Positions 22,957-56,180 of a DNA stretch of 64,000 nucleotides are shown here, piece after piece. The notes below the pieces were generated by a model that saw only the letters and a list, made by a program, of their open reading frames with translations, had not been told where the DNA came from and did no database searches. Positions within the stretch are counted from its first letter, which is position 1, and every line of letters begins with the position of its first letter. The position numbers and the translations under genes are program-made. The stretch is taken from the NCBI GenBank assembly GCA_002104945.1, contig MCFH01000002.1, positions 682,001 through 746,000 of the forward strand, written 5' to 3'. This DNA comes from Piromyces finnis finn. Lineage: Eukaryota > Fungi > Neocallimastigomycota.

Positions 22957-25900
22957 ATGGTAAATTACTCTTCAAATAATAGAAAGTCAAATGACTACTG
23001 GAATTCTCAAAAGAGCATTAATCAAAATAATAAAATCACAAATTTAAAACTTTCAGGTTCAGTTGTTACTCAAAAGAAAGATGATGTCGTTACCAAGGTA
23101 AGAATGTCAAAAAAGGAAGAAATATCTATAAAATAATAATTATTATAATAGATATTGGTCATTTATATAACATTTTCTTTTATTTATTTTCATACCGTTG
23201 TATTTATATAAAATAAAAATTATGTCTGATTTTGAAAATTTCAAAGTCCATCGATTTATCTCTTCATTCATATTTAGGTTTAAATCAAAATAAGCAATTA
23301 AAATTAATTACTTCTCAAGTTATTAATGAATTTGGTTGTGGTATTTTTAGAGGATTAACAACATATCATAAGAAAACTGAAGATATTTTAAAGGCCATTT
23401 ATCAATTTCCAACATGCTATACGCTTTCTGGAGGTAAATTTTTCATTATATATAAATTTAAAAGAACGTCATTATAGAAGAGGAATATCAATAGTGATAA
23501 CAATAGGAATTTAATAATATAAAATATTGAAGGAAAATAATAATAATATGTGTTAAATGTTATTATTTATAAAGCTAAGATAGATTATTCAAAATCGAAT
23601 TGTGTTTAAATAATATGGTTTTTTTAAAATATTTTAGTATTGGGTAAAATACAAAAAAGTATAAAAGAGTAAAGTTTTTAAAATTAAGAATAGATGAATG
23701 AATAATATTATATAATATATATATAGACTATTTTATAACAAATAATATACACATGGAAATAAAGTTTTTTTTTCTTAATAATTTATGATACTAATAATTA
23801 TCATATTATATTTTTATATTCAATTTCAACAACAATTTACATAATATAAACCTTTTTTTTTTAATGAATAATTAGATGGAAATTCATTTGTTATTCCATT
23901 AATGGTTGGTAAAGGGGATGCTATTTTTGTTGATGTTGAAGCAAAGACTTCAATTAAAGATGGTTCAGAGTTATCAAATGCTACAGTCTATTACTATAGC
24001 CATAACGATCCAATTAGTCTTGAATCATGTCTTTTAAAGGCAAATCAAGAAGTACCAAATGGTAAAAAGCTTGTTGTTATTGAAGGTGTTTATAAAATAT
24101 CTGGTGATGTTGCTAAATTAAATGAATTTATTCCAATTGCCAAGAAATATGACGCTACTATTTTAGTAGATGAAAGCCATGCACTTGGTGTACTTGGTGC
24201 TAGAGGAAGAGGTTCATTAGAACAATTTAATGTTCGTGAGGGTGTTGATATTATTACTGGTTCATTAGAATATTCTCTTTGTTCTAATGGATCATATTTT
24301 CTTTTAAATAAACAATTAACTCAACAATTTAGTGGCTTTATCTCCATTAATGATACAATTACTCCATTAAGTGCTGCCATTGCTAGTACTACATTAGATA
24401 TTTTAAGACAAGATACTAAGATGATTGAACAATTAAAAAGTAATATTTCATGGTGGAGAACTAATTGTCAACAAAACGGTATTGAATTAATTGACAGCAC
24501 ATCATCAATTACTGCTATTAAAATTGATGACGAAAATGTTTTATTAAATCTTCAAAAAAGATTATTTGAAGAAGGATTAAATGTAATGGTTAGTACAAGT
24601 CCATATGGTTTATTAAAGTTCATACTCTCTGCTTCTTTAACTGAAGATCTTTTAGAAAAGGCTATGAATATTTTATTACATGTATTGTCTAATGAATTCC
24701 CTCAAATATTAAAGGCTATGCCACAAAAAATTATTTTAGATAGTAAAAATCCAACTGAAGAATCATCCATATTAGAAGATGTTCCAAGTACTGATCGTCT
24801 TAACCTTCCATTACCAAAAATCGCTATTATTGGTGTTGGCTGTCGTTTACCAGGTGATATATCAACAAAAGAAGACTTTTGGAACATGTTAGTTACCAAA
24901 CGTGTTGTTACTTCAGAAATTCCATCAGATCGTTGGGACCGTGAGGAATGGTTCAGTGAAGATCCTGTTCCAGGTACCATACAAACTAAGTGTGGTGGTT
25001 TCATTACCAATGCTTATGATTTTGATAACAAATATTTCTCTATTTCTCAAGCTGAAGCTTTTGAAATTACTCCAGAACAACGTTGGTTATGTGAACTTGC
25101 CGTTGAAACTATGGAAGATGCTAATATTCGCCCAGAAGAATTAAAAGGAAGTCAAACTGGTGTCTTTGTTGGTTCAGCAGGTATTGATTTTGGTGGTACA
25201 CAATTAGCTAATACTCTTCAAATGTCTGCTCATACTATGACTGGTTTAGAACCATCCATTTTCTCTAATCGTATTTCTTACATTTTTGATTTACATGGTC
25301 CATCAATTACTAGTAATACTGCTTGTTCTGCCTCTATGTCATCTTTATCTATGGCTTGTAATGCTATTGCTGTTGGTGATTGTGACAAGGCTTTTGTTGC
25401 TGGTTCAAACTTTTTACCAACTCCAGGTGGTTTTGTTGCCTTCTCTCAACTTAGAGTCGTTTCTAAAACCGGTTCTTGTAAGCCATTTGATGAAAAGGCT
25501 GATGGTTATGCTAGACTTGAAGGTGCTTGTATGCTTTTAATTAAGGATTATGAAAAGGCTGTTAGAGATAATGATAAGATTTATGCCACTATTATTAGTA
25601 GTGGTACTAATGAAGATGGTCGTACTTTATCTATTACTCTGCCATCTTCAGATGCCCAATGTGCCTTAATGCAATGGGTTTGTGAAAAGAGTAATATCAA
25701 GGCTGATACCATTGATTACGTTGAAGCCCATGGCACTGGTACTCCAACTGGTGATCCAATTGAAGCTAGATCTATCGGTAATGCATTTGGTAAAAAGGTT
25801 CGTTCTCCAAATAGTAAACCACTTCCAGTTGGTACTGTTAAAGGTAATGTTGGTCATGGTGAATTCTTAAGTGGCGCTATTGGTTTATTAAAGGTTTCTT

Positions 25901-28900
25901 TAATGCTTTTCAACAGACAATTGGTTCCAACTGCCGCTTTTGAAAAGTTAAATCCAAAAATTGATGTTGATGGTTTGGGTATTCGTGTTGCTGATAAAAA
26001 TGAACCATTAGTCAAGATTAATGGTAAGATTAATACTCCATTCCGTGCTGCTGTTAACTCTTTTGGTTTTGGTGGTGCTAATGCTAATGCTATTTTAGAA
26101 TCTGTTGATAAAATTGATGTCGAATCAGTTGATATTGTCAAGAGAGGCAATACCTTACCATTAATGGTTACTCTTACTGGTTTCAGTGCTAAGGCATTAG
26201 TTAGTGTTGTTAAGGAATACATGAAATTACCGGTAAAACAACTTTTACCAAAACTTTATTTAATGACAACTACAAGACAAATACATTCTCATCGTGTTAC
26301 CTTCTTATTAGATGATGCCAATGAATTTTATGAATTAGCTAATGCTTTTGTAAACAATCAACCACATCCAAAGGTTATTCATCATCTTGTTAAGGCCTCC
26401 CATAAGCAAGGTATTACTTTTGTTTTTAGAGGTATTAGTGAGTTAAAAACCAATTTAGGTTATAGCTTATACCAAAATAATAAAATGTTTGCTGATGTTG
26501 TTGACTATTGTGACAAGATTCTTGAGAAGATTAGCCAGGGCTACTCTGTTAAGAAAAACACCGGTCTTTTCTTAAAGGAAAACTTAGATGCTGCTACCCT
26601 TCAAAGTCCAAAGATTTCTGTTGTTGGTAGTGGTATGATCCAACTTGCTATGGCTCATCTTTTAAAGACCTATGGTATTGTTCCATCCTCTGTTGTTGGT
26701 TACAATACTGGTGAAATCGCTGCTGCTTATGCCACTGGTATTATTTCTTTAGAAGATGCCATTCTTATTTTATACCAATTTAGTAATATATTAGAAAAGG
26801 TCCCAGGTAAGGAAGATATCTATACCCTTGAACTTGGTTGTTCTGCTGAACAAGCTCAATCTAGCATAATTAATCAACTCTCTACTTCCGCTTATATTAC
26901 TGGTAATAATGCTAGCAATATTTGTACACTTTGTGGTAGTAGTGCTGCCTTAAACCAAGCTATTCAATTAGCTCAACAATCCAATATTCCAATTTTATCT
27001 AATTTAATTCCAGGATCATGTGGTATTTGTACTCCATTCCTTAACAATTTCAAGAATGAATTCCATGAAGCCTTAAAGGACATTGGTAGCCGCTGCAAAG
27101 CTCCAGCAACTCCATTTATCTCAACTACTTTAAGTCAACCATTCAATGGTCCATTAAATGAATATTATTGGTGGGCTAACTTTACTAGTACTGTTAACTT
27201 TAATGTTGCTCTTTCCCTTGCTATGAATGAACAACAAAAAGGTAGTGGATATATTTTAGATGTTGGCTGTGGTTATTCCAATGCTCTTTTCAACAATTAT
27301 CTTGCTTCATACGCCGAAGCTGATAAAATCTTTGCTACCCATGATGTAACTGGTGCCAACGATGCTCTTGCTTTCGTATATACTATTGCTAATCTTTTTG
27401 AAAGAAATGCTATTCCATTACCTTCAATGGATAAATTATGGGAAACTAGTGCCGATGTTATTGGTGTAGACGCTTTCAAAAAAATAAGAAGTGTTAACTT
27501 TATTTTACCACCACATGTCTGGGAACATAAGACTATTAAGAAGGCTTACAATAAGGAAATTTTCATTAGTTTAAAGAAGAATCAAGAACTTACTGAAAAA
27601 CAAAAGGAACAAGTTAGTTTAACTGGTGGTATCACTGTAGACCATGATAACAAGTACAATGTTGAAATTGAAAAGTTAAAAAAAGAAATTAATGAAATTT
27701 CTCAAAAAGAAGCTAAGAAGGCTCAAGAAGTTGCCAAGGAAAATGCTAAGAAAATTGAAGACATGAAAAAGCAATTTGAATTAGAAAAGGAACAAGAAAT
27801 CAAAAAGAGGGTTGATGAAGAAAAAAAGATTATTTTAAAGGAAGCTAGGGGTTATATTACTAATGAAATGACAAAGTTAAGAAAGAGCGCTGCTAATTCT
27901 AGAACTGCTTCACCATTACCAGTTAAGACTCCAGCCGAAAAGATTCCAGCTGCTCCAGCTGTTATGCATTACTCTGGTAATAATGAATCATGGAATTATG
28001 AAAATCATAAATATTTAGTAGACCATGTTGTTGGAAAGGATGTTGTCTTCCCAGCTGCTGGTAGTGTTAGTCGTGCAATGTATGGTTTCAAACAAAGTAG
28101 AGGTGAATATAACTTTGATAACACTCGTAACATTGTCTTTGAAAATCTTGAATTCTTAAACTTGGCTGTCTTCCAAAAGTCTGCTCAAGAACAATTAAAT
28201 AAAAAGGGACCAATTCCACTTTCTCTTGTTGAAGAAGGTGAAGGAAAGTTCAGTATTGTTCAAAAGAATGGTATTCCAGTAAGTAAGGGTCAATTCTATG
28301 AGCCACAACTTACTCAAAGTAAGGAAGAAAACGCTAACTTATTAGATGATGTTCCACCATTTGAAGAATTTGTTAACAGATGTTCTACCAAGGTTGGTGG
28401 TAATGGGGTTACTGCTGCTCAATTATACAAAAGAACTGATGCTTTAGGTCTTATGTACGGTCCAAACTTCCAACTTGTTCAAAATGGAAGAGCCGGTGAT
28501 AATGTTGGTTATGCTCGTATTGAGGTCGATGAAGAAAAGTCTAAATTAATTTGCCATCCAGCTGTTCTTGATGCATGCTTCCATTCTATTATTGGAACAG
28601 GTATTGCTAATGGTGACCGTCAACCATTACCAAACAAGATTAAAAAATTCATTATGGGTCGCGGTGGTTATTTCCCACAAGGTACAATTATTTGTGCTGC
28701 TGATATTATTAAACACGATTTAAAGAATGTTGTTGTCAATATATACATTTATGATGAAGAAAAGAAACCAATTGCCAAGATAGAAGAAATGGACATGATC
28801 ATCCGCCAACTTAATGTATTAAATAATAAAAGATGGATTAAGTATATGGGTGAAGAAGTTTTGGCCTCATCTCAACAAGATTTATTACCACTTCAAAATA

Positions 28901-31900
28901 GTTCTGCTGTTTTAATTATTGGTGAAAAACAACAAGAATCAGAAATCACATCCATATTATTACCACGTATTGCACCATTACAATCTGTAATCTATATGAT
29001 TTTAGATAATTATGATGAACAATTTAAGGCCATGCTTAGTTCAAATGTCTTAATTCCACAAACTACTTTAGTTATTGATGTCAGATACTTGGTTAATCCA
29101 TCCATAGATTATGCCTTCACTACAATGAAATTATTAATCGAAAATAACTTCAACCTTGTCTATGGTAATATTGACTCTGCTAATAAATTAGTCATTGACG
29201 AAACTTACCAAAACATGGCTTTCGGTAACAGTATTGCTGGTTTATTACAAGTAGCTCGTGCTGAATCTAAGAATAACTTAATCTTTTCTATTCAATCCGA
29301 AAACCTTGATAAATTCACCCATGGTTTATTACGTGGTAACTTAAGAATTGAAGATCCAGATATTAGAGTAAAGGAAGATTATAGAATTACTGCTCAAAGA
29401 ATTATTAAAAATCCAGTTATTCCAGAAATTAAAACCAAGAATTACACTTTAGAACACAGTAGTACTGGTCAAATTGGTAAATTAAAGTTCCGTGAAGTTT
29501 TCGGTTTACCAGAATGTGGTCCAGACGAAATTATTATTAAGATTCAAAGTGTTGCCCTTCAATTTAAAGATATTATGAGTGTCATGAATAATTTACCAGG
29601 TTACAATGTATATGAACCAGGTATGGAAAGTAATGGTTATGTTGTTAAGATTGGTGAAAATGCTAAGAAGCACGTTAATTTCAAGATTGGACAACCTGTC
29701 TTTGCCTTTACTCATAAATATGGACATATGGTTTCTACCTATGGTAAAGCTCACTATAAGTTGGTTAAGCCAATGATCAATAATGATATGAATCCAGAAA
29801 ACTACAGTTCTGTTGTTGTCATGGGTACTGTATTATATGCTATTCGTGATCGTGCTGGTGGCATTAAACCAGGTCAAAGTATTTTAATTCAGTCAGCAGC
29901 TGGTGGTGTTGGTCAAGCTGCTATTAAATTATGTCAATACTGGGGTGCTAAGGTATATGTCAGTACTTCTGCTCGTAAGAGAAAATACTTGGAGGACTTG
30001 TATGGATTAGAACACATTACAGATTCCAGAAATCCAAAGACTTTCTATGAAGATATTATGAAGTGGACCAACAACGAAGGTGTGGACTTTGTCTTAAATG
30101 CTCTTGCTGGTGATGGTATTACCTATGGTCTTAAGTGCTTAAAGAAAGGAGGTCGTTTCATTGAAATTGGAAAGAAAAACATTATTATCAATACTCCATT
30201 AGGTTTAAAGAGTTTAATGAATAATATCAACTTCTGCTCTGCTCATATTGATTTATTAGATGTTGACAAGCTTTCTAGTTTAATGAACGAATCCTTTAAA
30301 CTTATCAACACCGGTAAAATTACACCAATTCCAGTTACCCAAGTCCCAATTAAGAAGTACCTTTCTGCCTTCTTCAACCTTGCTTCTGGTAACAATGTTG
30401 GTAAGACTTGTATTGTTATGGATGATGAATATGAACCATCTTGTAAACCAGTTAATCTTGTAAAAGAGGATAAATCATACATCATTACTGGTGCTTTTGG
30501 TGGTGTTGGTTTACGTGTTGCCTTATGGCTTCAATTAAGAGGTGCCAAAAACATTGTTTTAACTACCTCTGGAAATGCTGCCAAACGTAATAAGAACCCA
30601 ATTGTTGAAGGTCTTCGTAGTAAGGGTGTTAACGTTACCGTTTGTCAATGTGACATTTCAAATATTAATGCTGTTCGTAAATTATTCCAAGAAACTACTC
30701 CACAAGTTGGTGGTATTTTCCATCTTGCTAACAAATTCTTACCAGGTTTAATTCCAAGAACTTCATTAGAACAATTCCATATTGCTTACGATCCAAAGGC
30801 TAAAGGTGCTTTAAATCTTCATCTTGTTAGTAAGGATTACCCAATAGATATGTTTGTCTTATTCTCTTCTGTCCTTGATTTATTAGGTAATAAGGGTCAA
30901 GCTGCTTATGGTGCTGCTAATTCCTTCCTTGGTTCTTTAGTTGAATTCCGTCGTTCCAAAGGTTTATGTGGTTCTTGTATTTCTTTACCAGCCATGAAGG
31001 GATCTGGTTACCTTGCCCAATTCAAACAAGAAAGACAAGCTAAGGGATTTGAAGGTTTAATTACCATGCTTGATTCTGACGATTTACCAGAATTATTAGA
31101 TGAAGCAATTCATTACAGTATGCCACCAAACGTTCTTATTCTTGATGAAGTTGCTAAGATCGATGTCCATACCGATGAAGTTGCTCCAACCACTTTAATT
31201 TATAAGCATCTTCGTTACCCAGATGCTAAGGATCCAGTATGTGAATTCAAGACCTTCCCACCAATTACTGTTTTAGAAAAGGAAAAGCAATACAACATTC
31301 CAAAGAATAAATATATCGCTAATGCTATTCCTGTTTCCACTACCATACCAACTCCAATGAAGCGTTCCTATTCTCCATCAACTAGTGTTGATAGTGATAA
31401 TACTATCGATGAATCTGCTCATGCTAAGACAGTTGATAATAAAATATTATTAAATGCTACTACATTGGACAGTCGTCGTTCTTATTCTCCATCACTTCAA
31501 CGTAAGCATATTCTTGAAAAGGTTAAACCACAAGCCTTTGCTGAAGATGATATCATCATCAGACCAACTGAAAAAGTTGTTTTCCTTACATTAAACAGAC
31601 CAGGTAGTATGAATGATTTACATGCTAATATGATGAGAAAAATCATTTCTGCTATTGATACCCAAAAAGCTCTTGTTATTGAAGGATCTGGTGATAACTT
31701 CTGTATGGGATGGACTTCTTCCAGTATGAATAAACACGAAACAACCGAAAACATATATCAACTTTATGGTGAATTAATAAAGAAGATGAATAAGGTTACC
31801 CAACCAATTGTTACTATCTGTAAGGGTGTTGTCTTTGGTGGTGGTATGATCTTCCCATGTATGTCAGATATTGTCATTGCTGAAAACAACGCTGTCTTTA

Positions 31901-34287
31901 GTTTCTATGAAAACCGCTTAAAGCAAATACCATTCATTCTTTCTAAAGCTGCTCAAAACAGAATAAAGCACAGTCAAATAAAGAAGATGTTCTTAATTGA
32001 AAAAGAAGCTGATATTGAAGAGGCTATTAATATGGAATTAGTAGATATTTCAGTTCCAGCTGATAAATTAGAAATGGAAAAGAAGAGTGTTCTTAGACGT
32101 ATTAATACACTTGATCCAACTGTTTTAAAGATTACCAAGGAAAATATTAAGGATGCAGAATTATCTTTGGAAGGCGCTTTAATTCGTTCCGCTTCAAATA
32201 AAACTACTTCATTTACTGGTCAAGCCATGGATCTTGTTAGTTTAGAATTATTAGAACCAAAAATCTATCTTCTTGAAATTAAAACTAACATCATTAATCC
32301 AGAAATCGCAGCTCAAATTGGAAATGCTTTCGAACAAATGAAAGAAAAGGATGATGCTCATGTCTTAATTGTTAAGTGCAATGGTGATGACTTCTGTCAA
32401 GGTTTTGATGCTGAATTCCTTAATAGCATATCCAATAAAACAAAGGGTCAATTAGCCAATGAAATTTATAATATTTACAAGAACTACAGTAAGAGTTCTG
32501 AATTAACCATTCCAGTTCTTTGCTGTCTTAATGGATCTGTTATGAATGCTGGTTTGAACTTTGCCTTAACCTCTGATTGGAGAGTCGCCACCAGAGAAAC
32601 TTGTCTTTCCTTCATTAATAAAACCAAAACTGTTGACTCTTCAGTCATGATGAGTCACAGTTTACAAGATTTTATAGGTCGTGGTAAGAGTTTTAATATG
32701 ATCTTCAACTATGATAATACTACCAACAATGCTATTGAAGCCCATAAACAAGGTATCATTCAAGAATTAGTTGCTAACCAAAGCCAATTATTAGATGCTG
32801 CTTTAGTTAAGGCTAGAATTATTGCTTCTGCTCCATTAAAGGGTATTAATCATTCTCTCAATTTAATGAGAATTCCATATGATAATTCCTCTTTAATGAA
32901 AGAAGCTTATACCTTTGCTAGTATTTTAAAGGATAAAATGGGTGGTTTCCACGAAACTGTTCTTCCAAAATCACAAACCCATTTCCAAAGTCAAATCCGT
33001 ACAACTCAAAATAATGCTGCTTCAGTCAAATCAGCTAGTCATGGAAGAAAAGCTGAAAACGTTGGTATCATTGGATTAGCTACCTACATTCCAAGTAGTA
33101 CTGTTAATATGACCAAATTAGAAGCGCATGATAATTGTCAAGGTAAATATACTATTAGTTTAGGACAAAAGTACATGTCATTAACTGCACCAAATGAAGA
33201 TGTTGTATCCATGGCTTTAAATGCTGTTAAACGTTTAATGAAGAAGATGAACTTAAAGCCAAGTGATATTGGTAGAATTCAAATTGGTACTGAAACACCA
33301 GTTGATTTAAGTAAGAGTGTCAAGACCTTTATTGTTGAACAATTCTTTGAACAAGGAATTACTGACATTGAAGGTGTTGATAATGTTAATGCTTGCTTCG
33401 GTTCTACTGCTGCCTTATTCGATACTGTAGCTTGGATGCAAAGTGACTTCTGGAATGGTAGATATGCTATTGTTGTAGGTACTGATATTTCTCAAGGTGA
33501 GGATATTTATCACTTCCTTACTGGTTCATCAGCCGTTGCATTATTAATTGGTCCAAACGCTAATTTAGTTGTTGAGCCAGAACGTGGTATTTTCAGTAAT
33601 AGTACTTTTGACTTTTATAAGCCATATGGTTACAAAAACCATTACCCAGTAGTTGATGGTAAATACTCTATAGATTGTTACCTTTCTTCCTTAAAGAGTT
33701 GTTATGAACAACTTAAGAAGAAGACTGGTTCTGAAACCGAATTCCTTGATCATCAATTTAGTGTTTTCCATAATTCAAGTGTTAGTTTAACTAGAAAGGG
33801 TTTCAATACTTTAATTGAACAAGAAATTTCCAAAGTACTTCCAAATGCCAAGATAATTGAAAAGAGAAAATTCATTTCAAATGTTTACAAAGAAAGAGTT
33901 GAAGCCTCTACTTTAATGACAGCTAATATGGGTTGTATGTACAATGCTTCTGTTCTTAATGGTATTATTTCCTTAAATGAATCTTTAACCCCAGAAGATA
34001 TTGGCAAACGTGTTTTGGTTTACTCTTTCGGTTCAGGATCTGTTGGTGCTCTTTGGACTTTACGTATTGATGGCTTAGCTGAAAAGGATGATTTAGTTAA
34101 TAGATTGAATAGTCGTAATGAAGTTTCAGTAGATACATACTTTGAAATTAGAAAATTATGGCTTGAAGAGATTAAAAAGTTTGGACGTTCATACAAGAAG
34201 GATCAATTTGAACTTCAAATCCGTGAAGGTGATTATTATTTATCAAGTGTTTCCCTTGATGGTGTACGTAAATATGAAATTGCTTAA
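22957..34287 (+). CDS. Type I PKS-like megasynthase: AOS-like / KS / inactive AT / coiled coil / DH / ER / KR / ECH / ECH / HMG-CoA synthase, ~3,579 aa
   Basis: join(22957..23097,23247..23433,23876..34287); the phases (0, 1) match and the total of 10,740 nt is divisible by 3. Motifs: KS NTACSAS, EAHGTGT, KGNVGH; DH HVVGKDVVFP and LDACFH; ER SAAGGVG; KR GAFGGVG and QAAYGAAN; two crotonase repeats; HMGS GTET, NACFG, VFH. Confidence 0.93.
23247..24710 (+). other. PLP-dependent alpha-oxoamine synthase-like domain (BioF/SPT/Fum8 fold) of the megasynthase, apparently lacking the Schiff-base Lys
   Basis: DLSLHSYLGL, VIEGVYKISGD, VDESHALGVLGARGRG and DIITGSLEYSL; the family consensus for the last motif is GTLSKA. 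Confidence 0.85.
24814..26100 (+). other. Ketosynthase domain with intact Cys-His-His
   Basis: Cys codon 25324-25326 (TACS), His 25729-25731 (EAHGTGT), His 25855-25857 (KGNVGH); the domain ends in NSFGFGGANA. Confidence 0.95.
26410..27420 (+). other. Acyltransferase-fold domain, catalytically degenerate
   Basis: FVFRG start; GYNTGEIAAAY at 26698-26730 where GHSxGE is expected; no xAFH motif (reads CGICTPF). Confidence 0.85.
27980..31120 (+). other. DH / structural pseudo-KR / ER / KR reductive region
   Basis: DH His 28024-28026 and Asp 28570-28572; ER nucleotide-binding motif near 29890; KR GAFGGVG near 30490 and catalytic Tyr at 30907-30909. Confidence 0.9.
31570..34287 (+). other. C-terminal ECH-ECH-HMG-CoA synthase cassette
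   Basis: ECH1 (FLTLNRP, FCMG, GVVFGGG, FSFYE); ECH2 (FCQGFD, LNGSVMNAG); HMGS with Glu 33292-33294, Cys 33394-33396 and His 33769-33771. Confidence 0.9.
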
Positions 34288-35471: not shown

Positions 35472-38400
35472 TTAAATCCAAGAGGTCCAACCTTCATACA
35501 TACAAGCTAAATTATCAATATTAATGGCTTGATTAATTACTTTATCAACATGCTTAGTAACATCCATCACTGAAGGATCAATTAATGGATCATAACCGTT
35601 TAATTTATCACGAATTCTGTATAAAATTTTCATTGCTTGTAAATTTCTTTCACTAATTTTTTGGGTATCTGCTACTTCTTCAGGAAGGTTCATTGAGTTA
35701 ATAACGGATTCTTCTTCACTTGGAATTATCATAGTTCTTAATTTATTACTATTATTAGACTCTTTTTCACTCTCACTTTTATCTTTAGATGATGAATTAT
35801 TCTCCTTCTCATTATGCTTTTTGGCACTCTTATTAGTATCTTTAGTATTAATGATATAAGATGTGTTTTCGTCTATATCTTTATTTTCATTAGATAAATA
35901 GTTTGCTTCTATTTCATTCGATAGTCCAATATTTTCTTGAATATTATAGATTATATCATTGTTTTTACTTATTTCCTTATCAATTTCTTCAATGCTATGA
36001 CCTTGTTGTGTATCGGCATCATTATTGAAGTCATTGTTTCTTTCAGTAAATTGGTAATTTTCTTTTATTTGTTTATTTTTTTCATCATATGTATCTTCAA
36101 TATCATTACTATTATTATTTGAAGACTTTTCTTTCTCACTTCCAATAATTTCATCTATAACATTGTTATTGAATTCAATTTCTTCATTAGTTAATGCAGA
36201 ATATGAATCCTTTGACGAATTATTGGATTTATTTATTCTAATACTGATACTACTATTACTACGACTATTATTAATGCCTCTATGATTATGGAATGATCTT
36301 TTGGAAGGCTTGCTATCACTTTGTTCATTATTAATATTTTGAAGATTTATTAATTTATTAGAAATTGTTTCAAATGCACTTATAAGCTCAGATATTCTCT
36401 TTATAAGTACTATTTCGGCTTTATCTACAGATCTTGATATTTTTAATTCATCAATAATTCTAACAAATTCTCTGCAATATGTATCCCATTCACTCCATAA
36501 AGTATTTATCTCTTCTACACAATCTATTGGTTCCTTTATTTTTTCGGCTGGTTTTAAAGCAGTTGAAGTAAGAGCTTGAATATCTTTATAGAGTTTTAAT
36601 GTAATATCAAATGTATTCTTTACAATTTGAATAAAGTCAGCATTAACAATATTTCCATCTATGTTATCCGATTTATTATGAATATCATTTCCCATAATCA
36701 AAAAATTATCATTGATTTCATTATTCAAATTATTCATTGGAAGAGCATGATACTTTGGTTGAAGATTATCATTATCGAATTTTCTATAGAATAAATTACT
36801 TATGTCTGTATCCTTTGCATTTGGATTATTAATGCTAATCATAGTATTGACAAATGCGTCAAATGAAATATTCTTACTATTGTTTTTTGGTGAATTAATA
36901 TCATTATCTTTTCTAATATCTTTATCAGAATAAAATGAATCATTAAATAATCTTATGTTGGAGTTGTCTTGATTTAATACCTTTTCAAATTCCTTTAAAT
37001 TTAAAGAAATAATATAATTAATTTCTTCAGTTTCTTCAGTTTCATCTACTCTTGTTGTTTCTAATGAAATGATTAACGAAGCAAATTCAATTAAATAATT
37101 GAATTTTTGATGCTCACTAAGTAGGAAATTGTCTACTTTTGACTTAATATTATCAATTTCTTGTTTAATATCATCTACGTCATCCTGTCTTATAAGTCCA
37201 TTTAATAATTTCTTTTGAGAATAAGACTCAATAATATTATAAATATTGTTGTAGGTAAGTTCAAGGTTTCTTAATTGACATATAGAATCTTTTAAATTTT
37301 CTATATCCTTTGTGCAAAGCTCAATAATTTGTTTTCTAATTGATTTTGGTGTTGTATAATCTATTTCATCGATGTGTTCTAAATCAATAAATTCTTTACT
37401 ATCACCTGGGTAGTCATCAAATTCTCTTGCTTTTATTAACGGATAATCATTCATTAATTGATATCTTATATAAGTTTCTCTGTTTAACTTTGTAAAATTA
37501 TCTACATATACTACACAACAATTACAATAATAGTATAAATCTTTTCTTAAATATAAATTTATAATATCTTGGAAAGAATCAAAAATATCAATATATTTCT
37601 TTTTATTATATTTCGGTAATTGAATAATACGTTTACTTTCTTGAAGGTAATCTTCAAATTCAGTAAATTTATCTTTTTCTTCAATATCTAAATTAATAAA
37701 TAATTCTGAGAAAATTCTTTTTAATTGGGATGACAATAATTTTAAATATATTTCATCAATAATAAATTTAATGAATTCGTTTATAGATTCAACAACTGAT
37801 TTAAAAGCTGGATTTTCAGAAACTAATACTTTCGTATCTAAATTATTTATCCATGATTGTGAAAATTTATCATCGTTAACAGGTATTGCTTGATAGAATT
37901 GTTTTACTGCTTTATTTGCTTCATTCAAATTTTTTATCTTCAAAACAAAAATTCTATCTTCCAATTTTTCATAGTATTCCTTATCTTCACTATTATTACA
38001 TTCTTCCTTTAAAAGAGATAATAACTCTTCAGCAGGAAGGAAAATATTACTTACAGTTTTATTAAAATATGAATTATTATAGCTATCTGCTGATAAATTA
38101 TTTATTATTCCAGAATATTGATTCTTTATTTCTCTGATATTTTGATAGTTAGAAGTTTGTTCTAATTTGTCAATTTTTTTAGCAATTGATTCAATTAAAT
38201 TAATTTGAATATCAATTGTATTATCATTGATGGAACGTAATAATTGAGGTATAAATGCAAATAAATAATCTTGCGGAATTTTCATTAAACTTCTTGCAAA
38301 TTCAATAAGAATTTCTTGTTCCTTGAAATATCCTTTAAAGAAATTAGCTGAAGTAAAGTTACGTATATCAGCAACTTTAAATAATATTCTTGATAAACTG

Positions 38401-41400
38401 AAAATACATATCATAAGAAGATAAATTTCCTTTAATTGATTCATATCAAAAACATCAATATGAAATATTACAGTTAATTCCCGAGATATATCAAGGTCAG
38501 TAAATTCAGTAGTTTCAATCTCTTTATGCTTAAACATATCTAAAATAATTTTACCATATTTATTGAAATAATTTAATAAAATTATCTTTACATACTGAGC
38601 ATGCAAGTCGTTGTCATTTGATAACATTTTATTAAATTCAATAATTTCTTCATCTATTTTCTCTTGACTAACCATTTCGATTTTATCAAAAGTATTTTTG
38701 AATATGTTTAAAATTTCGAATTTACTAAAGTAAGTTTTCTTCATTAGGTTTTCCAAACTAGCTACATTTATATACATTTCATGATCCAATTTTGCATCGT
38801 TACTTCTATCTTTGATGAATTTATTAAGGATTTTAATATTATCTAAAATAATTCTTTTATTATCACCATTATCAAATATATTATTTAATAATTTATATAT
38901 ATTTGTATAATAATCCTGATTTAATAAACTATTTGATATAGGAGCTGTGATTAACTGATAAGCATTAAGATGCTTAAAATAGCTTTTTATAGAATTTGTT
39001 CTAAATAATCTCCATGATTCTGATTTTTTAAATATATCCTTTATTTTTCCAATAAGATCAATATTATCATTAATATGTGGATAAATATTATTCTTTACAT
39101 TAATTCTTAATCTATTAAGATCAATAACATTAATTTGATTTTGAATATTTTGTAAAAATGTTCCATGAAGAGTACCATAAGTTGTTTGGAATTGTTGACT
39201 TTTACTTTCACATTTTTCATAAACACTATCTAATTCTTTCTTCATATATTCTAAAAATTCTTTTTCTTTGTTATTCAACTTCAAATTTTCCTCTTCAGCT
39301 ATATCAATATTTTGAACTTCAGTACTTAATTTTATATTACTAATATCACTTTTACTACTGTACATTAAAATATTACTACTTTCACTGTTATTACTGTGTT
39401 CAATTGAATCTGAGGATTCTTTGTTTTCCTTATTTTCCTTATTATTTCCTTTATATAATTCACGATATGAGATTTCTGTCATATGAACTTTAAGATAATG
39501 TTGTAAGCCCTTAAGATTATTAATAAATAGTTCCTTATTTTCTTTAATAACAGGACAAAGACCAGCAATACGAGTTGATAATAAGCCAATATTAACATTT
39601 AACTCTATTAATTGTTTTTCTTTGTTCTTCTTATAATCATTAGACCAATCTACTAATGGATCATAAATAAATGATTCTAAAATTGTCATAAGAATTTCTC
39701 TATTATCACGAAGAACGGAAAGAACATTTTCACATGCTATTCTAAACGGACCTTCAATACCATAAACACCCAATGCAGTTTGAAGATTTTGTGTTAATCT
39801 AAATGGAACAGTTTCTGGAACACACAATTTTTTACCTTTTTCAAAACATACATTATAATCAATATGAATAACTTCACCTGTATCAAAATCAATAAGAATA
39901 TTATCTAAATGTCTGTCCCCTAAGCCAATAATATATCCTATAATAGACATTACTGCTAATGAACGAGAATATGAATTAGTTTTTTCCCACCAAACAGTTG
40001 GTGAAGAAGAAGTAGTCCAAAATTCTTTTGCAATCAAGTCATTTGGAGTTTCGCGTCTTAATTCTAAAAATGCATAACGTTGAATATTAATTGGCCAATT
40101 CTTTCTTATTGGTCCTCTAACAAGGTTATTCTTACTAAATTGAGCATCTAATTTACTATAGAACATTTCATGAGGACGAATAGCAAAAGAAATATTACTT
40201 TCCTCATTATTTTTAATATTTTGAACTTCTTTTGCGTATTTTCTTTGTTGCCATTTCTTATATAAATGAAACATTTGTGTTGCATTTGTAACCCATTGAA
40301 TCATACCTAAATGACCAGATAATGGAACCACTGAATAATTTCTTGCTTGTAATTTCCTAGAATTGGATTTTTTATTACCCTTTAATATATTGTTAGTACA
40401 TGTAAGAAGTTGCATAATTCTTTCGTCCAAATGTAAGTCTTCCAAACCCTTAAGTAAATATATATAAACATTACCATCCGAACCATAAAGATTAATTCTT
40501 TTTGGTTTGGTTTTAGTTGGTAAAGCATAAATATATTCATCAAAATGTTGAATATATACAATTTCCTTTTTATTATAAATACCAGGCAATGGAATTTGAG
40601 ATTCTTTTATGTTAGCTAGATATGGACTAACATCAGCAAGAAGAATTTTTCTATTTTTCTGAACTTCCTTTGCAATTTCTTTATAAAGCTTATTGAATGG
40701 TTCCCATGCTTTTTGGAAACTTTCATTAGTGTTATCTTTTAAATTGTTGATAGCCTCTTCAAGTATTGGTTTATAGTTTTGATGGAACCATTTTTCATGA
40801 TCATTTTGAGGTTCATTATTAATTTCATTATAAAATGATTCAATAATATAGATAACTGGTTTTAAAAGTGAATTATAATTATTTTTTATAATATCATCTT
40901 TTTCTTCCTTAGTAAGTTGATTATTATTATTTACACGCTCGTTTTCCTTCTTTAAACGTAAGAAACGTTTATCAGTTTCCCCTTGAAGTTGTGTTAATTT
41001 ATTTAAAAGAGTTTCTTCCCAAAGAACAGTTACACGTTGAAGTTCACTTATCATTTTTTGAATTTCTTTAACTAACATCCCTGAACCACTTTGTATCAAC
41101 GAATCAATAATATTTTGATAGAGGCATCGGGTATCATTATCATTATTAGTTTCAGTAGCTGTTGAAATACCAACAATAGCTGGGTAAACAATTAAATGAG
41201 GAGAAATAATGCCAATTCTACATATTAAACTACAAATTTGATCTTGTACAAATGGTTCTGGGTGATCTAAACGAGTAAAAAGTTGTGGAATAATTTTTTC
41301 CCATGGAGAAATTGGTGTATTTGCAAAACCTTCACGATAAACACGGACAATATAGATACCATAATTTTCAAAAACATGAAGAAGTCTTAAAGCAATTTTG

Positions 41401-44400
41401 GTCATATTGCTTTCTTGATCATTTTTAATTTCAATTTTATCATTTTCAAATTCATCAAAGTACTTTAAGTATTTGAAATAATTGGTTACAGAATCTGTGA
41501 AATAACCAATTAAAACATTTTTAATTCTATTCAAAATAGATAACAATTCTTTTAATAACTCTTCATTAAGGTCTGGGAATAATTCATATAAATATTTTTT
41601 TATTTTATAATCCAATTCTGCAACATTTAATTTTCTATTTTCAAATTTAATTTTATAGGATGCTCCAAAAATTGATGTTAAAATAGAAAGGCAATCACCA
41701 TATATTTGATTTAAATTAAATATTTTATTAGTACTCCAGAAAACTTTCTTTTCAGAATAATTCAAAATGAACTTTTTCAAATCATAAAAACAATAATGCT
41801 TAATATTATCGACAGAACCTATTTCCATTTCTTCAAGTAAATCCTGAGCTTGAAGATAATAATAATTAGCTGCATTACACCATATTTTAGGATTTATGCC
41901 ACTTTCATCACAAGCTACAGAGTAAATTGATTGAACTAATAAATCAGATCTTTTTATACCCTCTTCTTCATCTATTTCAGCCTTATTTGCAATAAATCTT
42001 ATTTTTAAATCAACTGATTCTGGTAATTCTTCAATATTAAATTCTTCAGAGTTAGACATTTTTGTTAAAAAGTTGATTGTCTTAAGATAAACACTTGAAC
42101 GGAATTTAACTACTTCTTTATCATTAGTTGATGCATCATCAGAATCAGAATCGCAATTTCTTAATTCACTATCGATTAGATCTAAAAGAATATTAAATCC
42201 CTTATCATATTTCTTTTCATTTATATAAATCTTAGCTAATTCAAATATATAATCTTTAACAAAAAGTGGTGTGTTATCAATTAATAGCATATTTGGAATA
42301 TCACTTGTACTAAAATCATTCTTAATCTTCAACAAATTTTTCTGTATTAATTTTTGGCCTAAAATATTATTTCCTTGTTTTCTTGCGATTTTTGCAATAT
42401 CATAGTTAAGCTTTTTAATGTAATCGCCATCCTTCAAAACACGAGTATTATCTAAAAACGAAAAAATATCAAGCATTCGCATTAATATTGCTATATCAAC
42501 ATTTTCAGTTACTTCCTTATTTAGTAATATATTATTATTTATTTGAGAAAGAAGAACATTGGCATTTTTATCATTACTCAAATTTCCTTTTCCAATAGTT
42601 TCAATTATTTTTACAAGCTGTAACTGAATAATTACTGGCAATATTTCTTTAGAGGATGCAAAAGTACTATTTAATCTTTTTAATTGTTCATTTACAAGAA
42701 CTAAGGACTTATTCATCATTGATTTTAATTGAGGGAAATTATTATTATTTTTTTCATTAATTAAAAGCATAGAATATAATGTGTAATATTGAGAAGAATT
42801 CATAACAGCACGATTCATACCAACAGATTCATAAGTTTCACGGAAGTTTGGTGATGTTTTTGAAATATTTAAATAAGCAGCGTGATAATTATTATTTTCA
42901 AAATCTTCCCATGCCTCAAAAAGTTTTGGATTTTTACCATTCTCAAAAGAGCAAAGAGGATAATTAGAATTTTCAATGTTCACAGATTTAACATAATGTA
43001 AAAATTCTCTTATATTACTCCAATCATTTAAATTCTTATAACATTCTACAATTTGTTTAATAACAAAAGAAATCAAATTGGGACTTAATTTTCCATCCTC
43101 TTGATACTTATTTAAAAAGAATCTGTATTTAACAACTGCTTCTTCGTATTTATTCTCTGCCACCAATGCTGCAACTAATATCCATTCTAAATGATATTGG
43201 TAGCCATCTTTATTGGAAGGTGATGTCTTTTTCTGTAATAAAATTTGTAGATAAGCATTGTCCTTCTTTTTAGTATTTTTTTTCATTTCTTGAATTATTA
43301 ATTTTTTCAACCAATAATATATACCAACAATTGGATCTGGATCTTTTAATTGTTGAAGAGCTAATATCAATTCAATTATTACTTGCTCATATTCAATTAA
43401 ATGGTTATATGTTTCTTTTGAATATTGTTTTATATAGTTAATCTTATCATATAAATAATGCATACAGTGTCTAACTACATATGATGCAGACGTACCGAAT
43501 ATCTTTGAATCCAAAATAATTAATTTACGAATTCGTAAAAACCATTCTTCACAAACTCTACTATTGACGCTAAAGAATACAGTTCTTGAACGAGGAAATT
43601 CAGCAGGTTTTTCTAAAGCAGTTCCTTCATAAGCATTGTAGATTTGTAATTCTAAGAGATCAATAAAAGGAATTAAATAACCTAAATATCTGGTTCTACT
43701 AATAAACTTAAGGTTTTCAAAATTATTAATATTTTCTTTACTCTTCCATATTTTATTCAAACTATGTTCAATAAATTCAAATGTTTTTTGTGCATCACCA
43801 TGAGTTGTCTTTAATTTTGATAAAATACAATATCTTACCATTTCCCAAAGTGCCCAGAAACGCAATTTTTTACGAGTTAAGATTTTATCTACAATTTCAA
43901 TTTTATCATTTATATTTCCTTTCATTTTCGTAAAGTTTATAGACGCAGTATTTAAAACCTCAGAAACTTGACACATATGATAAATGTCTAATAACCAATT
44001 AATATTTTCAATTTGGGTTTCATACATATTATTACCATAATTTTCAGATTCATCATTATATTCTCCACTTATATTCAAATTTCTAACAATCATTTGGAAA
44101 TGTTCATATGTAAAATTACTGTCATTTGGAGAAGCCATGACACATTCATTAAAATTAGATTCTTCTACTAACTTTTTTTCCTTTGTTGACCACTTATTTA
44201 ATGAAACTATTGGGTTGATTCTATTTATTACCTTTAATATATCAGTACATACTTTTGTATTTATATCATTTAAATAATGAACAATTATATTATATATTTT
44301 ATTAACATGCTTATCATTTATTTCAGTAAAACCTTTCAAGTCAATGAAATATAAAAGGGTATCATTTGCCAAAAGTCGTATATCTGAATCATTATCATAT

Positions 44401-47400
44401 TTTATTCTTTTATATAACTTATATAAAATTTTACTACATAATTCATAAGCTTCTTCACATTTATTAGTTACGTCTGTTTTATGATAAATGGAACCTATGC
44501 TTTTTATCCAATTTATACAATAATTAATTTGAACATTAGTAGAAAACTTATTGTTAATAATATATAATATTAATTTCAATATGGCAGTATGAAGATTTGG
44601 TTGATAAATAAAATGATTATTGTTTTCACTAATTTGATATATAGCGTTTAATAATATCTTATCTAAATTATTTCTAAATGAATAATCATTTATTCTTGAT
44701 GATCTTGCTGGTTCATTAACAAAAATTAAATATAATGTCCAAAATACGTTTTTTACTTTTAAATTTTTAATAAAATTGTGTTTTTCAATTTCATTTAATA
44801 TATTTATATCATATTCAAAACAATTTTTTAATTCTTCATAAGAATATTCATCTAATAAACCTTTAATAGTATCATCGGTTTTATTTATATTCTTAGGTAC
44901 TAAGCTTTCAAGGTTTTTCCATAAATCATATGCTTTTCTTCTTTCTTCTATAATTCTTATATATCCTTGATCAAAATCTTCTTCTTCTTCATTATCACTT
45001 ATAATTCCACTCTCATCCCACATTTCAATTATACTTTCACCCTTATATTTATTTACTAATTTAAGAGAAATATATTGTAATTCAACTAAAATTTCACTTA
45101 ATCTAAACTTTTTTCTTTTTAATGATCTAGTAACAGGATCAAATTCAGGAATTTGATTTATCGTAATACCATTTGAGCAATCAATTACTTCACTTATATC
45201 TTGTGGAATTAAATTTTCATCATAAATAACAGACTGTTCAACTATAGAAAAGAATCTTCTTGCAATTGGAACTATGATATTAATATTCAAATTATTTAAA
45301 TGATATAATTTTAATCTAATTTTATTCATCAACTGAGATTGTGGATTAAAGAAAACATCAAATACATCAATACTAAGATTTGGAACCCATTGTTCTATCA
45401 TCTTTTTTTATAGAATTTTGTATTTCATAATTAAGAAAAATAATTATTAACAAAGAGTATGATTAGTATCTTATATTATTTATATATAATTTTGAAATAT
45501 AGGGATTACCTCAAATAAATCATTTACTGTAATATTGAATAGTTCAGTTACTCTATTATCTAACTTCAATACTAATTCCATACGTTCAATGCTGCAAATA
45601 CATGCAGCATATTGATATGGTATAAATAATTTTCCTAAATAACTGCTTAACTTTTTTATCATTGATTTTTCTTTGATATATATATATAAAAAAAAAAAGT
45701 ATGTGGTAATAATATTATTTAAAAATAATTAATTAATTAATTATCTACATATATATTATAAAAATAAAATATATAATTAAAATACCTTGGTTAATCCATT
45801 TATTCAAATAAGAAACTTTCGATATTTTTTCTAAAAGTGATAAAAATTTTACTAACAATATATCAACATCTTCTGATACTTCTGAAATAGATTTTATTTG
45901 CTCATCGTTATTTGGAACAATCTCTGTTACTAATATATAGAACAATGAACAAAAGCATCTTTATTTTATAATAATATATATAAAACAATAACAATAAATA
46001 TTGAATTATTTAAATATATAAAATGTTGTATATTTGAGAAGGAATAACAATTATTACTTAAAAAGGAATATCTTTTTATTTAAACTTTCACCAATTAAAG
46101 ATTCAGATGTTGCTATGTTATTTTCTTCTATGCATTCCTTTTGATACACTGTTTCCACATCTGAAATTAAATTATTTAAAATCTCTAATATGAACTTAAT
46201 ATGATTACTGACATAATTGTGAAGAATTTCAAAAGTTTCTATATAAATTATATAATAAATTATTTATTAAATTTTTTATCAAAATATCTTAATATATTAT
46301 AATAGATAATTTGAATAACATACTATCAATGTGTTTCAGTACTTTCTTAGGTAATTGCGGATCAATATACCAGCCAATTAATAAATCAACTATTTCCTAT
46401 TATTGTTTTTATCCATATTAATATCTAATTTTATTTGATTTTATTTGATTTTATACTATTTTCGTATCATCAAACTTACTTCATATTTACTATTAAATAT
46501 GTCTGGATAATCTTGACTTAAAGTTTGAATTATTGATAATATTATAGGAAGATAATCATGAGTTTCTACTGAATCTAATAAATTTTGTAGACTATCCAAT
46601 ATTCTTATTACATATCTGTATATTAATTCTTTATTTTCGTTTGATGTGATTATCTATATTAATAAATTATAATAATAAATTTATTATCAATATAATATAG
46701 AAATTATTGTGTTAATTAGTATCATTAAATATATATATATTTAATTGTGTATACCTTTTCAACACTTAATAACGTCCATAATTTCTTTTCATTTTCTTGT
46801 TCTTTCATTAAATTTGGATTTGATTTATTAACATTTAAAATATTAAATATCCAATTAAAAACAAAATCATTTGCCAATACATCACCATTTTTTGAAAGAA
46901 TGGATATAATTTCTATTGAAATCTTTTTTAAATCTGTAGGTGCACTGGTTAAAAAAAAAAAAAAAAAAGGAAATAAAAAATAAAAAAAAAATATTAATGA
47001 TATAAATTAGTATTTTATATTTAATATTATTGATTATAGTTATATGTATAATATTTTATAATGATGCTATTATTGAATTAAATAAGATTATCTTACTTTA
47101 AATCAATAAATACTTTTTCCAAACCATTATACGTTAATAATAAGTTAATGATACTTGAAATTTCCTGAGAATTTAATGTTTTTATTGTGTTCAATAAATT
47201 ATTTGCATTTTTTATTCGTTGTTGATAATTTACATTTTTTATATATATAATTTTTGATAATTGTTTTTTTAAATCTTTTTTTAATTGTTGAAATTGCTCA
47301 TTAAGATTTTCTTTATATTATTTTAAAGAAAAAAATAGGATTTTAAAATTTGAATATAAAAGATACATAATAGTATAGCTAAGATTTTATAAAATAAATT

Positions 47401-55462: not shown

Positions 55463-56180
55463 TTAAATATCGTACATTTCACCAACAACATTGGCATATT
55501 GGTCATTAAGAGTAGCAAGAGTAGCTCTGTGGAGGTTTTTACCTAAAACCATGTTGTTCATACCATCTGGAATATCACGGTCACCACATGCGTTACCGAC
55601 AATAGTAACCTTGTAACCAAGTTCGTATGCAGCACGAGTGGTAGCATCGACACTTAACTATTTTTATATTAAAATAAAAAAAAATATTAATTATTATTTT
55701 AATATATAATATTCATTAATTGACTCTTTCAATCATTCAATCTATAGATCAATTTAATGATATAATTACATGAGTTGAATAACCAGCAATAATTAAGTTC
55801 TTTCTACCAGTAGAATCAATTTCTTCTTTTAAGTTGGTTTTTAAGAAACCATTTGGTGTAGTTTTCATAATAACCTTTTCGTTAGCTTTTGGTTCTAAGT
55901 ATTTAATTGGCTTAGTAGTAACACCACCAAGAGAGAAAAGTTCAGCATTTGGATTACCAACAGTCATAACATGAATAATTGGCATTTTATTTTGTCTGGC
56001 GGTTTCTAAACAGAAACGAAGGGATTCAGATGAAGTTTTGAAATTGTGGGCTGGAATCTTACCACATTCTGGGTTGAATTCTTGTTGAGCTGAAAGTAAT
56101 AATAAAACTGAATTGTTGTAAGAGAACTTTCCCTTCTTGCAGTTTTGAATTTCATTAATAGTCTTTCCGTATGGGGACAT
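55463..56180 (-). CDS. Isochorismatase/cysteine-hydrolase family protein with variant catalytic residues; 2 exons, 201 aa
   Basis: complement(join(55463..55657,55770..56180)). Motifs: VLLLLSAQQEF, ARQNKMPIIHV, EKVIMKTTPNGF, LIIAGYSTH|LSVDATTRAAYELGYKVTIVGNAC. Confidence 0.88.

Follow-up and report, generated by a model that had tools for sequence, protein, structure and literature searches.

The enzymology of type I polyketide synthases (PKSs) and fatty acid synthases (FASs) rests on a tethered acyl carrier protein (ACP) and on an acyltransferase (AT) that loads it, the latter being either built into the synthase or supplied in trans. Fungal type I PKSs that lack an ACP have nevertheless been reported, namely CgPKS11 of Chaetomium globosum and PKSs of the lichens Peltigera and Endocarpon, and ACP-less condensing enzymes that use acyl-CoA directly, the macrotetrolide ketosynthases, are cited in the same work (PMC8471558). 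Here we describe a gene of the anaerobic fungus Piromyces finnis, at 22957-34287 (+) of a 64,000-nucleotide stretch of contig MCFH01000002.1 (assembly GCA_002104945.1, positions 682,001 to 746,000), hereafter the window. Its product is a megasynthase that descends from a highly reducing type I PKS and in which three parts are dead or absent: the pyridoxal phosphate (PLP) lysine of an oxoamine-synthase domain, the entire AT active site, and the ACP. The original prediction, which had drawn attention to the loss of AT and ACP, held that fungal type I PKSs carry both in cis. As a generalisation this is too absolute, given the ACP-less enzymes already on record.

Pfam and NCBIfam place the domains in the order AONS°-KS-(KS-AT linker)-AT°-DH-ER-KR-linker-ECH-ECH-HMGS. 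These stand for an 8-amino-7-oxononanoate synthase-like domain (AONS), ketosynthase (KS), dehydratase (DH), enoylreductase (ER), ketoreductase (KR), two enoyl-CoA hydratase or crotonase domains (ECH) and 3-hydroxy-3-methylglutaryl-CoA synthase (HMGS), and ° marks a domain whose fold is kept and whose catalytic residues are gone. All lie on the + strand. The region to which the original prediction pointed, 26410-31560, extends from the AT through the linker that follows the KR.

The AT° domain (26416-27228) matches PF00698 at 2e-22, and both of its subdomains still align, over profile positions 1-256 of 319. HMMER alignments to solved ATs place the motif GYNTG (26698-26712; residues 933-937 of the open reading frame, ORF), found exactly where it had first been noted, on the GHSxGE of Dictyostelium PKS16 and mycocerosic acid synthase. 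The same alignments show the GQGxQ motif replaced by RGISE (26428-26442), the malonyl-binding Arg by Phe, and the catalytic His by Cys within GICTP (27022-27036). On this reading the AT fold is retained and its catalytic residues are lost.

Comparison with relatives suggests that this is an old condition. The change of His to Tyr in GHSxG is fixed in all of them, and the nucleophile and catalytic-His positions drift independently, with the nucleophile position reading N, S, N, G and G across the orthologues and the paralogue. Thus the orthologue P0002 has GYSTG with Ser at the catalytic-His position, P0003, L004 and L008/L009 have GYNSG with Cys, and the orthologue P0004 and the paralogue P0121 have GYGIG and GYGAG, respectively, with His. 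The earlier statement that no catalytic His lies downstream therefore holds for P. finnis, and the two relatives with a His at that position have Gly in place of the nucleophile. Independent drift of this kind is what a long-disused active site would be expected to show.

The ACP is missing altogether. PF00550 finds no match in the whole protein at E-values up to 5-10, none in the KR-ECH linker, the ECH-HMGS linker or the insert after the AT when these are scanned separately (E up to 10), and none in four orthologues. Positive controls behave as they should: in seven of nine distant single-module relatives Pfam places an ACP 60-100 residues beyond the KR, and in three bimodular ones it detects one behind each KR. 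A hidden Markov model (HMM) built from seven of these ACPs detects the ACPs of three proteins outside its training set at 1e-16 to 1e-19, and scores about zero on every member of the PKS family examined. Run against a six-frame translation of the window, it returns nothing better than E=1.4. When the alignment of the family or of the linker is set against that of the ACPs in a profile-profile comparison (hhalign), the probability is 0.2%. Elsewhere in the window neither an ACP nor an AT was found, as the original prediction had stated, and nothing else resembling a PKS was found there either.

Its further claim that the protein contains no GxDSL phosphopantetheine motif is borne out as well, the tripeptide DS[LIVMF] being absent from all 3461 amino acids of the ORF. 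The one look-alike, MLDSDD (31066-31083), had rightly been assigned to the C-terminal region of the KR; it is invariant in orthologues, present in the paralogue and unmatched by the ACP profile. We accordingly rejected MLDSDD as a phosphopantetheine site, as it belongs to the KR fold.

The usual ACP site is occupied by a KR-ECH linker of about 115 amino acids (31222-31569), rich in K, P, T, I, S and D. The earlier description of this region as a Ser/Thr/Pro-rich linker was correct in finding no ACP there, but its frame stopped at 31560; the ORF continues past that point into ECH-ECH-HMGS, whose CoA-dependent ancestry has a direct bearing on the question of substrate, and reaches 34287. An AlphaFold2 model of the linker has a pLDDT of 34 and no helical bundle, which is uninformative alone. 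A hidden ACP in this linker or in the insert after the AT was rejected, since hhalign, Pfam (E<=10) and the ACP HMM (with the --max setting) each gave a negative result.

Within this otherwise fast-evolving linker, RSYSP and [SV][VI]DS[DE]xT[IL] stand out as short conserved motifs (31366-31413 and 31480-31494). Five orthologues share both, as do P0121 (residues 2379-2437) and L010 of the paralogous clade. The second appears as SVDSDNTIDE at 31390-31413. As a phosphopantetheine site SVDSDNTIDE was rejected, since it lacks a hydrophobic residue after the Ser, lies in a disordered linker and is more CK2-like. The motifs, acidic CK2-like or proline-directed in character, are probably regulatory phosphosites, and that they mark an unconventional attachment site for a prosthetic group is highly improbable.

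The third dead element lies at the N-terminus. The AONS° domain (23911-24669; PF00155, 1e-15) resembles class I/II aminotransferases of the 8-amino-7-oxononanoate synthase and serine palmitoyltransferase (SPT) kind. Read against the usual motif, however, the PLP-lysine position holds a Tyr, in GSLEYSL, which is invariant in orthologues. The upstream NHAS-type motif reads AKTS, of which KTS is likewise invariant. Scores of 110-149 bits against the NCBIfam SPT/BioF models fall far short of their cutoffs of 394-670, so the domain does not qualify as an alpha-oxoamine synthase (BioF/SPT/KBL).

These losses are set within a protein that is otherwise well kept. The KS (24817-25941; PF00109 2e-69, PF02801 6e-32) has an intact Cys-His-His triad, with TACSAS, EAHGTGT and GNVGHGE invariant in four orthologues and the three catalytic residues also present in the paralogue. 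The DH (27997-28797; PF21089, PF14765) carries its catalytic His and Asp in HxxxGxxxxP and DxxxH, both residues being kept in P0121. The ER (29518-30408; PF08240, PF00107, PF13602) has GGVG, and the KR (30475-31221; PF08659, 2e-45), which includes the C-terminal region mentioned above, has GxGxxG and its K, S and Y. In the HMGS, the catalytic Cys lies in NACFGST, invariant in orthologues, and the Glu and His in GTETPVD and VFHNS.

Pairwise ratios of nonsynonymous to synonymous substitution (dN/dS) between orthologues, computed domain by domain, point the same way. They are 0.08-0.10 for the KS, 0.04-0.14 for the DH, 0.05-0.07 for the ER, 0.07-0.14 for the KR, 0.06-0.11 for the HMGS and 0.05-0.17 for the ECH domains. 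The corresponding values are 0.11-0.31 for AT°, 0.13-0.23 for AONS° and 0.24-0.43 for the KR-ECH linker. The two dead domains thus change at two to three times the rate of the live ones, yet remain under purifying selection, which fits a structural role and suggests that the AT and AONS folds may have been kept as structural pieces.

Independent sequence and published expression data complete this picture. Contigs from four public runs, belonging to three studies, cover 26000-31900 without any difference. At about 11.0 kb, three of them are as long as the spliced mRNA should be, although this does not certify an RNA origin. The orthologue L002 carries the three exons as one continuous frame, as a transcript would, and the same stop closes both the annotated and the transcript-derived proteins. 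In Swift et al. (2021) the gene (MycoCosm 316229) is assigned to "PKS family 6", with orthologues in C. churrovis and N. californiae and a SMURF-predicted A. robustus member, 187102 (SI Table S3), and the family is reported to be transcribed in culture and its protein detected by proteomics in three species (PMC8106346). The paper says nothing of the losses described here. In text searches, it and its supplements showed no "HMG", and "ACP" only for a Sanghuangporus PKS.

Given an intact frame of 3579 codons, low dN/dS, conserved architecture, identical independent sequence, and published transcription and proteomics, the gene is real, conserved and expressed, and its protein is functional and not decaying. 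Two parts of the original prediction are upheld here: KS, DH, ER and KR are intact by their catalytic and cofactor motifs and by dN/dS of 0.04-0.14, and the loss is selective and not part of a general decay, every domain having a dN/dS of 0.04-0.31 within a conserved architecture.

The losses are shared by the relatives of the P. finnis protein. Orthologues are 79-90% identical with the same Pfam set, and the architecture recurs in at least four further species-level sequences as well as in a paralogous clade. Checking relatives for the same losses, as had been proposed, recovered the same substitutions and the ACP-less architecture in six other sequences. An exhaustive HMMER search of 1.84 billion representatives, with the DH-ER-KR region as query, ranked the orthologue cluster first, followed by the paralogous cluster P0121, the fragment P0137, and then relatives of 29-33% identity, mostly multimodular. 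The paralogue P0121 (2678 amino acids) is 36% identical, and 40% identical over the whole DH-ER-KR region, and has the order KS-AT°(GYGAG)-DH-weak ER-KR-low-complexity linker-single ECH, with no ACP.

A metagenome scan added L010, which belongs to the paralogous clade, and more orthologues, and no family member with an ACP was found in that scan or in the exhaustive HMMER search. The paralogous clade thus comprises P0121/P0269, L010 and P0137, all ACP-less, beyond which there are only relatives of at most 33% identity. Since this clade likewise has a dead AT and no ACP, the AT active site and the ACP were lost before the duplication that separates the two clades. Word-based protein searches for paralogues that keep an ACP or a live AT gave orthologues only. 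A bacterial trans-AT origin of the KS was also considered and set aside, as the ranking of solved structures showed no preference, with CurL, mycocerosic acid synthase, Dictyostelium PKS16 and DEBS scoring alike.

One relative is damaged. In Neocallimastix sp. 'constans' (GCA_050613775.1; L004:10001-19711), the orthologous locus is broken and annotated as two genes. Its frame changes near 11900, 15020 and 17356, and the KR-ECH linker contains an in-frame stop. Along the P. finnis ORF the match skips from residue 2551 to residue 3155, so that ECH1, ECH2 and the first hundred or so residues of the HMGS are missing. This copy may be a pseudogene or an assembly error.

Downstream of the linker, the protein carries domains with a recognisable ancestry. 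The HMGS (33055-34278) passes the eukaryotic HMG-CoA synthase model TIGR01833 (308.1 bits against a cutoff of 286.2). Plant and human HMG-CoA synthases match it at 250 bits (1.5e-73 for the plant structure 2f82) and bacterial MvaS at 100-124 bits, whereas the ACP-dependent CurD (1e-7) and PksG (4e-6) reach only about 30 bits. With its score and its Cys, Glu and His in place, it is predicted to be a eukaryotic-type HMG-CoA synthase. ECH1 (31570-32154; PF00378) is closest to methylglutaconyl-type CoA hydratases, its best solved relative being isohexenylglutaconyl-CoA hydratase (4zu2, 9e-19), with PksH at 6e-7. ECH2 (32284-32871) is a second PF00378 stretch, recognised by NCBIfam as an enoyl-CoA hydratase at residues 2795-2990. 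The oxoamine-synthase family, for its part, uses acyl-CoA substrates. From the HMGS scores, the ECH1 match and the acyl-CoA use of the AONS family, we conclude that the domains fused to the PKS core descend, as far as similarity can tell, from CoA-dependent enzymes and not from the bacterial ACP-dependent beta-branching cassette.

As the protein is functional, it has to obtain its thioester substrates from elsewhere. The original prediction had offered three ways in which this might happen: an ACP and AT acting in trans, pairing with another synthase, or independence of ACP. One of the three must hold, but only if the protein is functional, which the evidence says it is.

Because the HMGS is of the eukaryotic type and ECH1 lies nearest the methylglutaconyl-type CoA hydratases, we favour direct use of CoA over a partner ACP and AT. 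The FATP-like acyl-CoA synthetase gene downstream of the PKS gene, its counterpart in the N. californiae PKS6 cluster, and the cited condensing enzymes that take acyl-CoA without an ACP (PMC8471558) also count in favour of this reading. That the enzyme may work on CoA thioesters without a carrier protein of its own is thus our preferred reading, tentatively held and given a little less than an even chance. In this scheme the KS would supply or extend a beta-ketoacyl thioester, and the KR, DH and ER would reduce the beta-ketoacyl chain. From a beta-ketoacyl-CoA and acetyl-CoA, the HMGS, ECH1 and ECH2 would together make first an HMG-CoA-like intermediate, next one resembling methylglutaconyl-CoA, and finally a 3-methyl-branched enoyl-CoA, with ECH2 acting as the decarboxylase. 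Fusion of the domains would provide proximity, replacing the tethering that normally comes from an ACP. While the ancestry of the domains can be read directly, the substrates and the order of the steps are what we infer from it. In its boldest form, the proposal would make this a "type I CoA-PKS". Condensation, full reduction and HMGS-type beta-branching would all take place on CoA thioesters with no carrier at all. The ACP would have been replaced by enzymes of CoA metabolism (an Erg13-type HMGS and methylglutaconyl-type crotonases), and the products would be branched, isoprenoid-like acyl-CoAs in an anaerobe. Taken as a whole, this stronger version is rather unlikely.

Several considerations weigh against direct use of CoA. 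That the HMGS and ECH domains are homologous to CoA enzymes reveals where they come from and not what they act on at present. We know of no type I PKS whose KS, KR, DH and ER are able to work efficiently on CoA esters, and of none that takes malonyl-CoA as extender without an ACP. The next alternative draws on the fact that the KS and reducing domains of canonical type I synthases are all adapted to substrates carried on an ACP. On this view the protein is one subunit of a multi-protein synthase, with a separately encoded ACP, which could be stand-alone or belong to a tandem-ACP megasynthase or an A-ACP-KS-AT° protein, and a separate active acyltransferase loading malonate, either dedicated or the MPT domain of the FAS. 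KS, DH, ER, KR, ECH and HMGS would then all act in trans on the carrier, much as in PUFA synthases or split trans-AT modules, with the dead AT and AONS folds as platforms for docking. The purifying selection on those folds suggests such a structural or docking role. However, the window holds no candidate ACP, AT or other PKS-like partner, and in sequence the fused HMGS and ECH1 take after CoA-dependent enzymes and not after the ACP-dependent PksG, CurD and PksH types. We regard this alternative as plausible and place it second.

A less probable alternative treats the PKS core as an oligomerisation or regulatory scaffold that performs no chain extension, with only the C-terminal HMGS-ECH-ECH cassette or some of the domains being catalytic. 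Points in its favour are three original domains that are dead already, an ER in the paralogue P0121 that is weak and possibly degenerate, and the phosphosite-like motifs conserved in the linker, which suggest regulation. A scaffold, however, does not account for catalytic and cofactor motifs that are invariant in the KS, DH, ER and KR, for the slower evolution of these domains relative to AT° and AONS°, or for the retention of the KS and DH catalytic residues in the paralogue, and we consider it improbable. An artefact or decay, whether by sequencing or assembly error, a missed exon, recent pseudogenisation or a hidden divergent ACP, could draw on the broken Neocallimastix locus with its deletion of about 600 amino acids and on a linker model too uncertain to exclude structure alone, but is very hard to maintain against the agreement of the four runs (which excludes sequencing error), the same losses in six other sequences, dN/dS far below 1 throughout (which excludes a P. 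finnis pseudogene), the shared stop of annotated and transcript-derived proteins, and the negative ACP HMM and hhalign results.

The gene itself consists of three exons, as recovered by mapping the P. finnis hypothetical protein BCR36DRAFT_316229 (3579 amino acids) back onto the window. Exon 1 (22957-23097; residues 1-47) matches the N-terminus of P0001 exactly and is followed by GT, exon 2 (23244-23432; residues 47-109), in which the oxoamine-synthase-like domain begins, also matches P0001 exactly, and exon 3 (23875-34287) runs for 10.4 kb to the stop codon. A single open frame at 23902-34287 accounts for 3461 codons, and its translation is 100% identical to the annotated protein. Between AT° and DH lies a charged insert (27577-27906) that matches no Pfam family. 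Its roughly 110 amino acids include 23 K and 19 E, its length varies among orthologues, and it resembles a charged single helix or coiled coil.

The window is very AT-rich, with a GC content of 13-24% outside genes and 34% within the PKS gene. The PKS gene (23902-34284; GC 0.339, GC at third codon positions 0.216) exceeds both the neighbouring SMG1 gene (35475-45401; 0.246 and 0.153) and a kinase gene (0.259 and 0.144), a difference that amino-acid composition, expression level or origin might explain. The SMG1-type PI3K-related kinase (3309 amino acids, 35472-45401, -) stands tail to tail with the PKS gene, an arrangement conserved in Neocallimastix (L004). About 16 kb downstream of the PKS gene is an AMP-binding, FATP-like acyl-CoA synthetase gene (exons 50705-52597, +; PF00501, 6e-6), and a two-exon isochorismatase-family gene (55466-56180, -) also lies downstream. 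The PKS6 cluster of N. californiae likewise lists AMP-binding and isochorismatase genes (Swift et al. SI, PMC8106346).

An expressed family without AT and ACP, whose KS, DH, ER and KR are strongly constrained across genera of anaerobic gut fungi, amounts to a natural experiment on how such domains work untethered. If the substrates are CoA thioesters, the family would offer a compact, carrier-free route to branched acyl-CoAs, possibly useful for engineering. If the carrier acts in trans, it would reveal a multi-subunit, trans-AT-like organisation of PKSs in fungi. In either case, the published view of PKS family 6 as an ordinary iterative type I PKS (Swift et al. 2021) is corrected.

Set against described systems, the protein is neither a canonical cis-AT PKS nor a trans-AT PKS. 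It has the KS triad and the DH, ER and KR motifs of a canonical cis-AT highly reducing type I PKS, and lacks that enzyme's AT residues and ACP. A trans-AT PKS has an ACP in the module and a KS followed by an AT-docking remnant, whereas here the ACP is absent and the AT fold is kept whole. Trans-AT beta-branching relies on ACP-dependent PksG/CurD-type HMGS and PksH/PksI-type ECH enzymes, which these domains are not. ACP-less fungal PKSs were already known, as were dead ATs and HMGS/ECH branching in bacterial trans-AT systems. What is new is the combination of a dead AT, no ACP, a dead AONS domain, and an Erg13-type HMGS and CoA-type crotonases at the ACP site, conserved and expressed across anaerobic fungi, which we did not find described in the literature searched.

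CgPKS11 and the lichen PKSs resemble the P. finnis enzyme in being highly reducing type I PKSs with no ACP and no stand-alone ACP nearby. In CgPKS11, however, KS and AT are listed as essential for building the chain, no AT defect is reported, and most homologues have an ACP (PMC8471558). In P. finnis the AT is also dead, the loss extends across the clade and to the paralogue, and ECH-ECH-HMGS stands at the ACP site. The bacterial trans-AT beta-branching systems (PksG/H/I of bacillaene; CurD/E/F of curacin) share the set of KS, HMGS, an ECH1 dehydratase and an ECH2 decarboxylase, with no working AT in the module. They differ in that every module contains ACPs, often in tandem, and in having a discrete AT, a dedicated donor ACP, and HMGS and ECH enzymes that depend on ACP. 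Where they have a docking remnant, the P. finnis enzyme keeps a complete dead AT fold.

Carrier-free chemistry offers further comparisons. Leucine catabolism in reverse and the myxobacterial alternative isovaleryl-CoA route (MvaS, LiuC, AibA/B) join a CoA-bound HMGS, a methylglutaconyl-type hydratase and a decarboxylation, and it is from this hydratase group that the best solved relative of ECH1 comes. The enzymes of these routes are nevertheless separate and soluble, and their decarboxylase is not a crotonase, whereas in P. finnis all are fused to the PKS core. The archaeal thiolase/HMG-CoA synthase channelling complex (6esq, a weak match to the HMGS) also couples a condensing enzyme, of the thiolase superfamily, to an HMGS, which allows a beta-ketoacyl-CoA to be handed over without a carrier. 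That complex is a non-covalent assembly of small proteins and handles acetyl-CoA only, while the P. finnis protein combines a PKS-type KS of the decarboxylating kind with a reducing loop in one polypeptide.

The PUFA synthases (Pfa/ORF A-C) provide a precedent for ACP-less multidomain subunits, which act in trans on a tandem-ACP subunit. They differ in having a FabA-type DH and a KS-CLF pair and in lacking HMGS and ECH. The closest solved structures are those of Dictyostelium PKS16 (9nju) and mycocerosic acid synthase (5bp1, 9d2z), which show the same KS-AT-DH-ER-KR order and match the P. finnis protein at 297-310 bits over the KS and 62-72 bits over the AT. Their ATs carry GHSxG, unlike the GYNTG of P. 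finnis.

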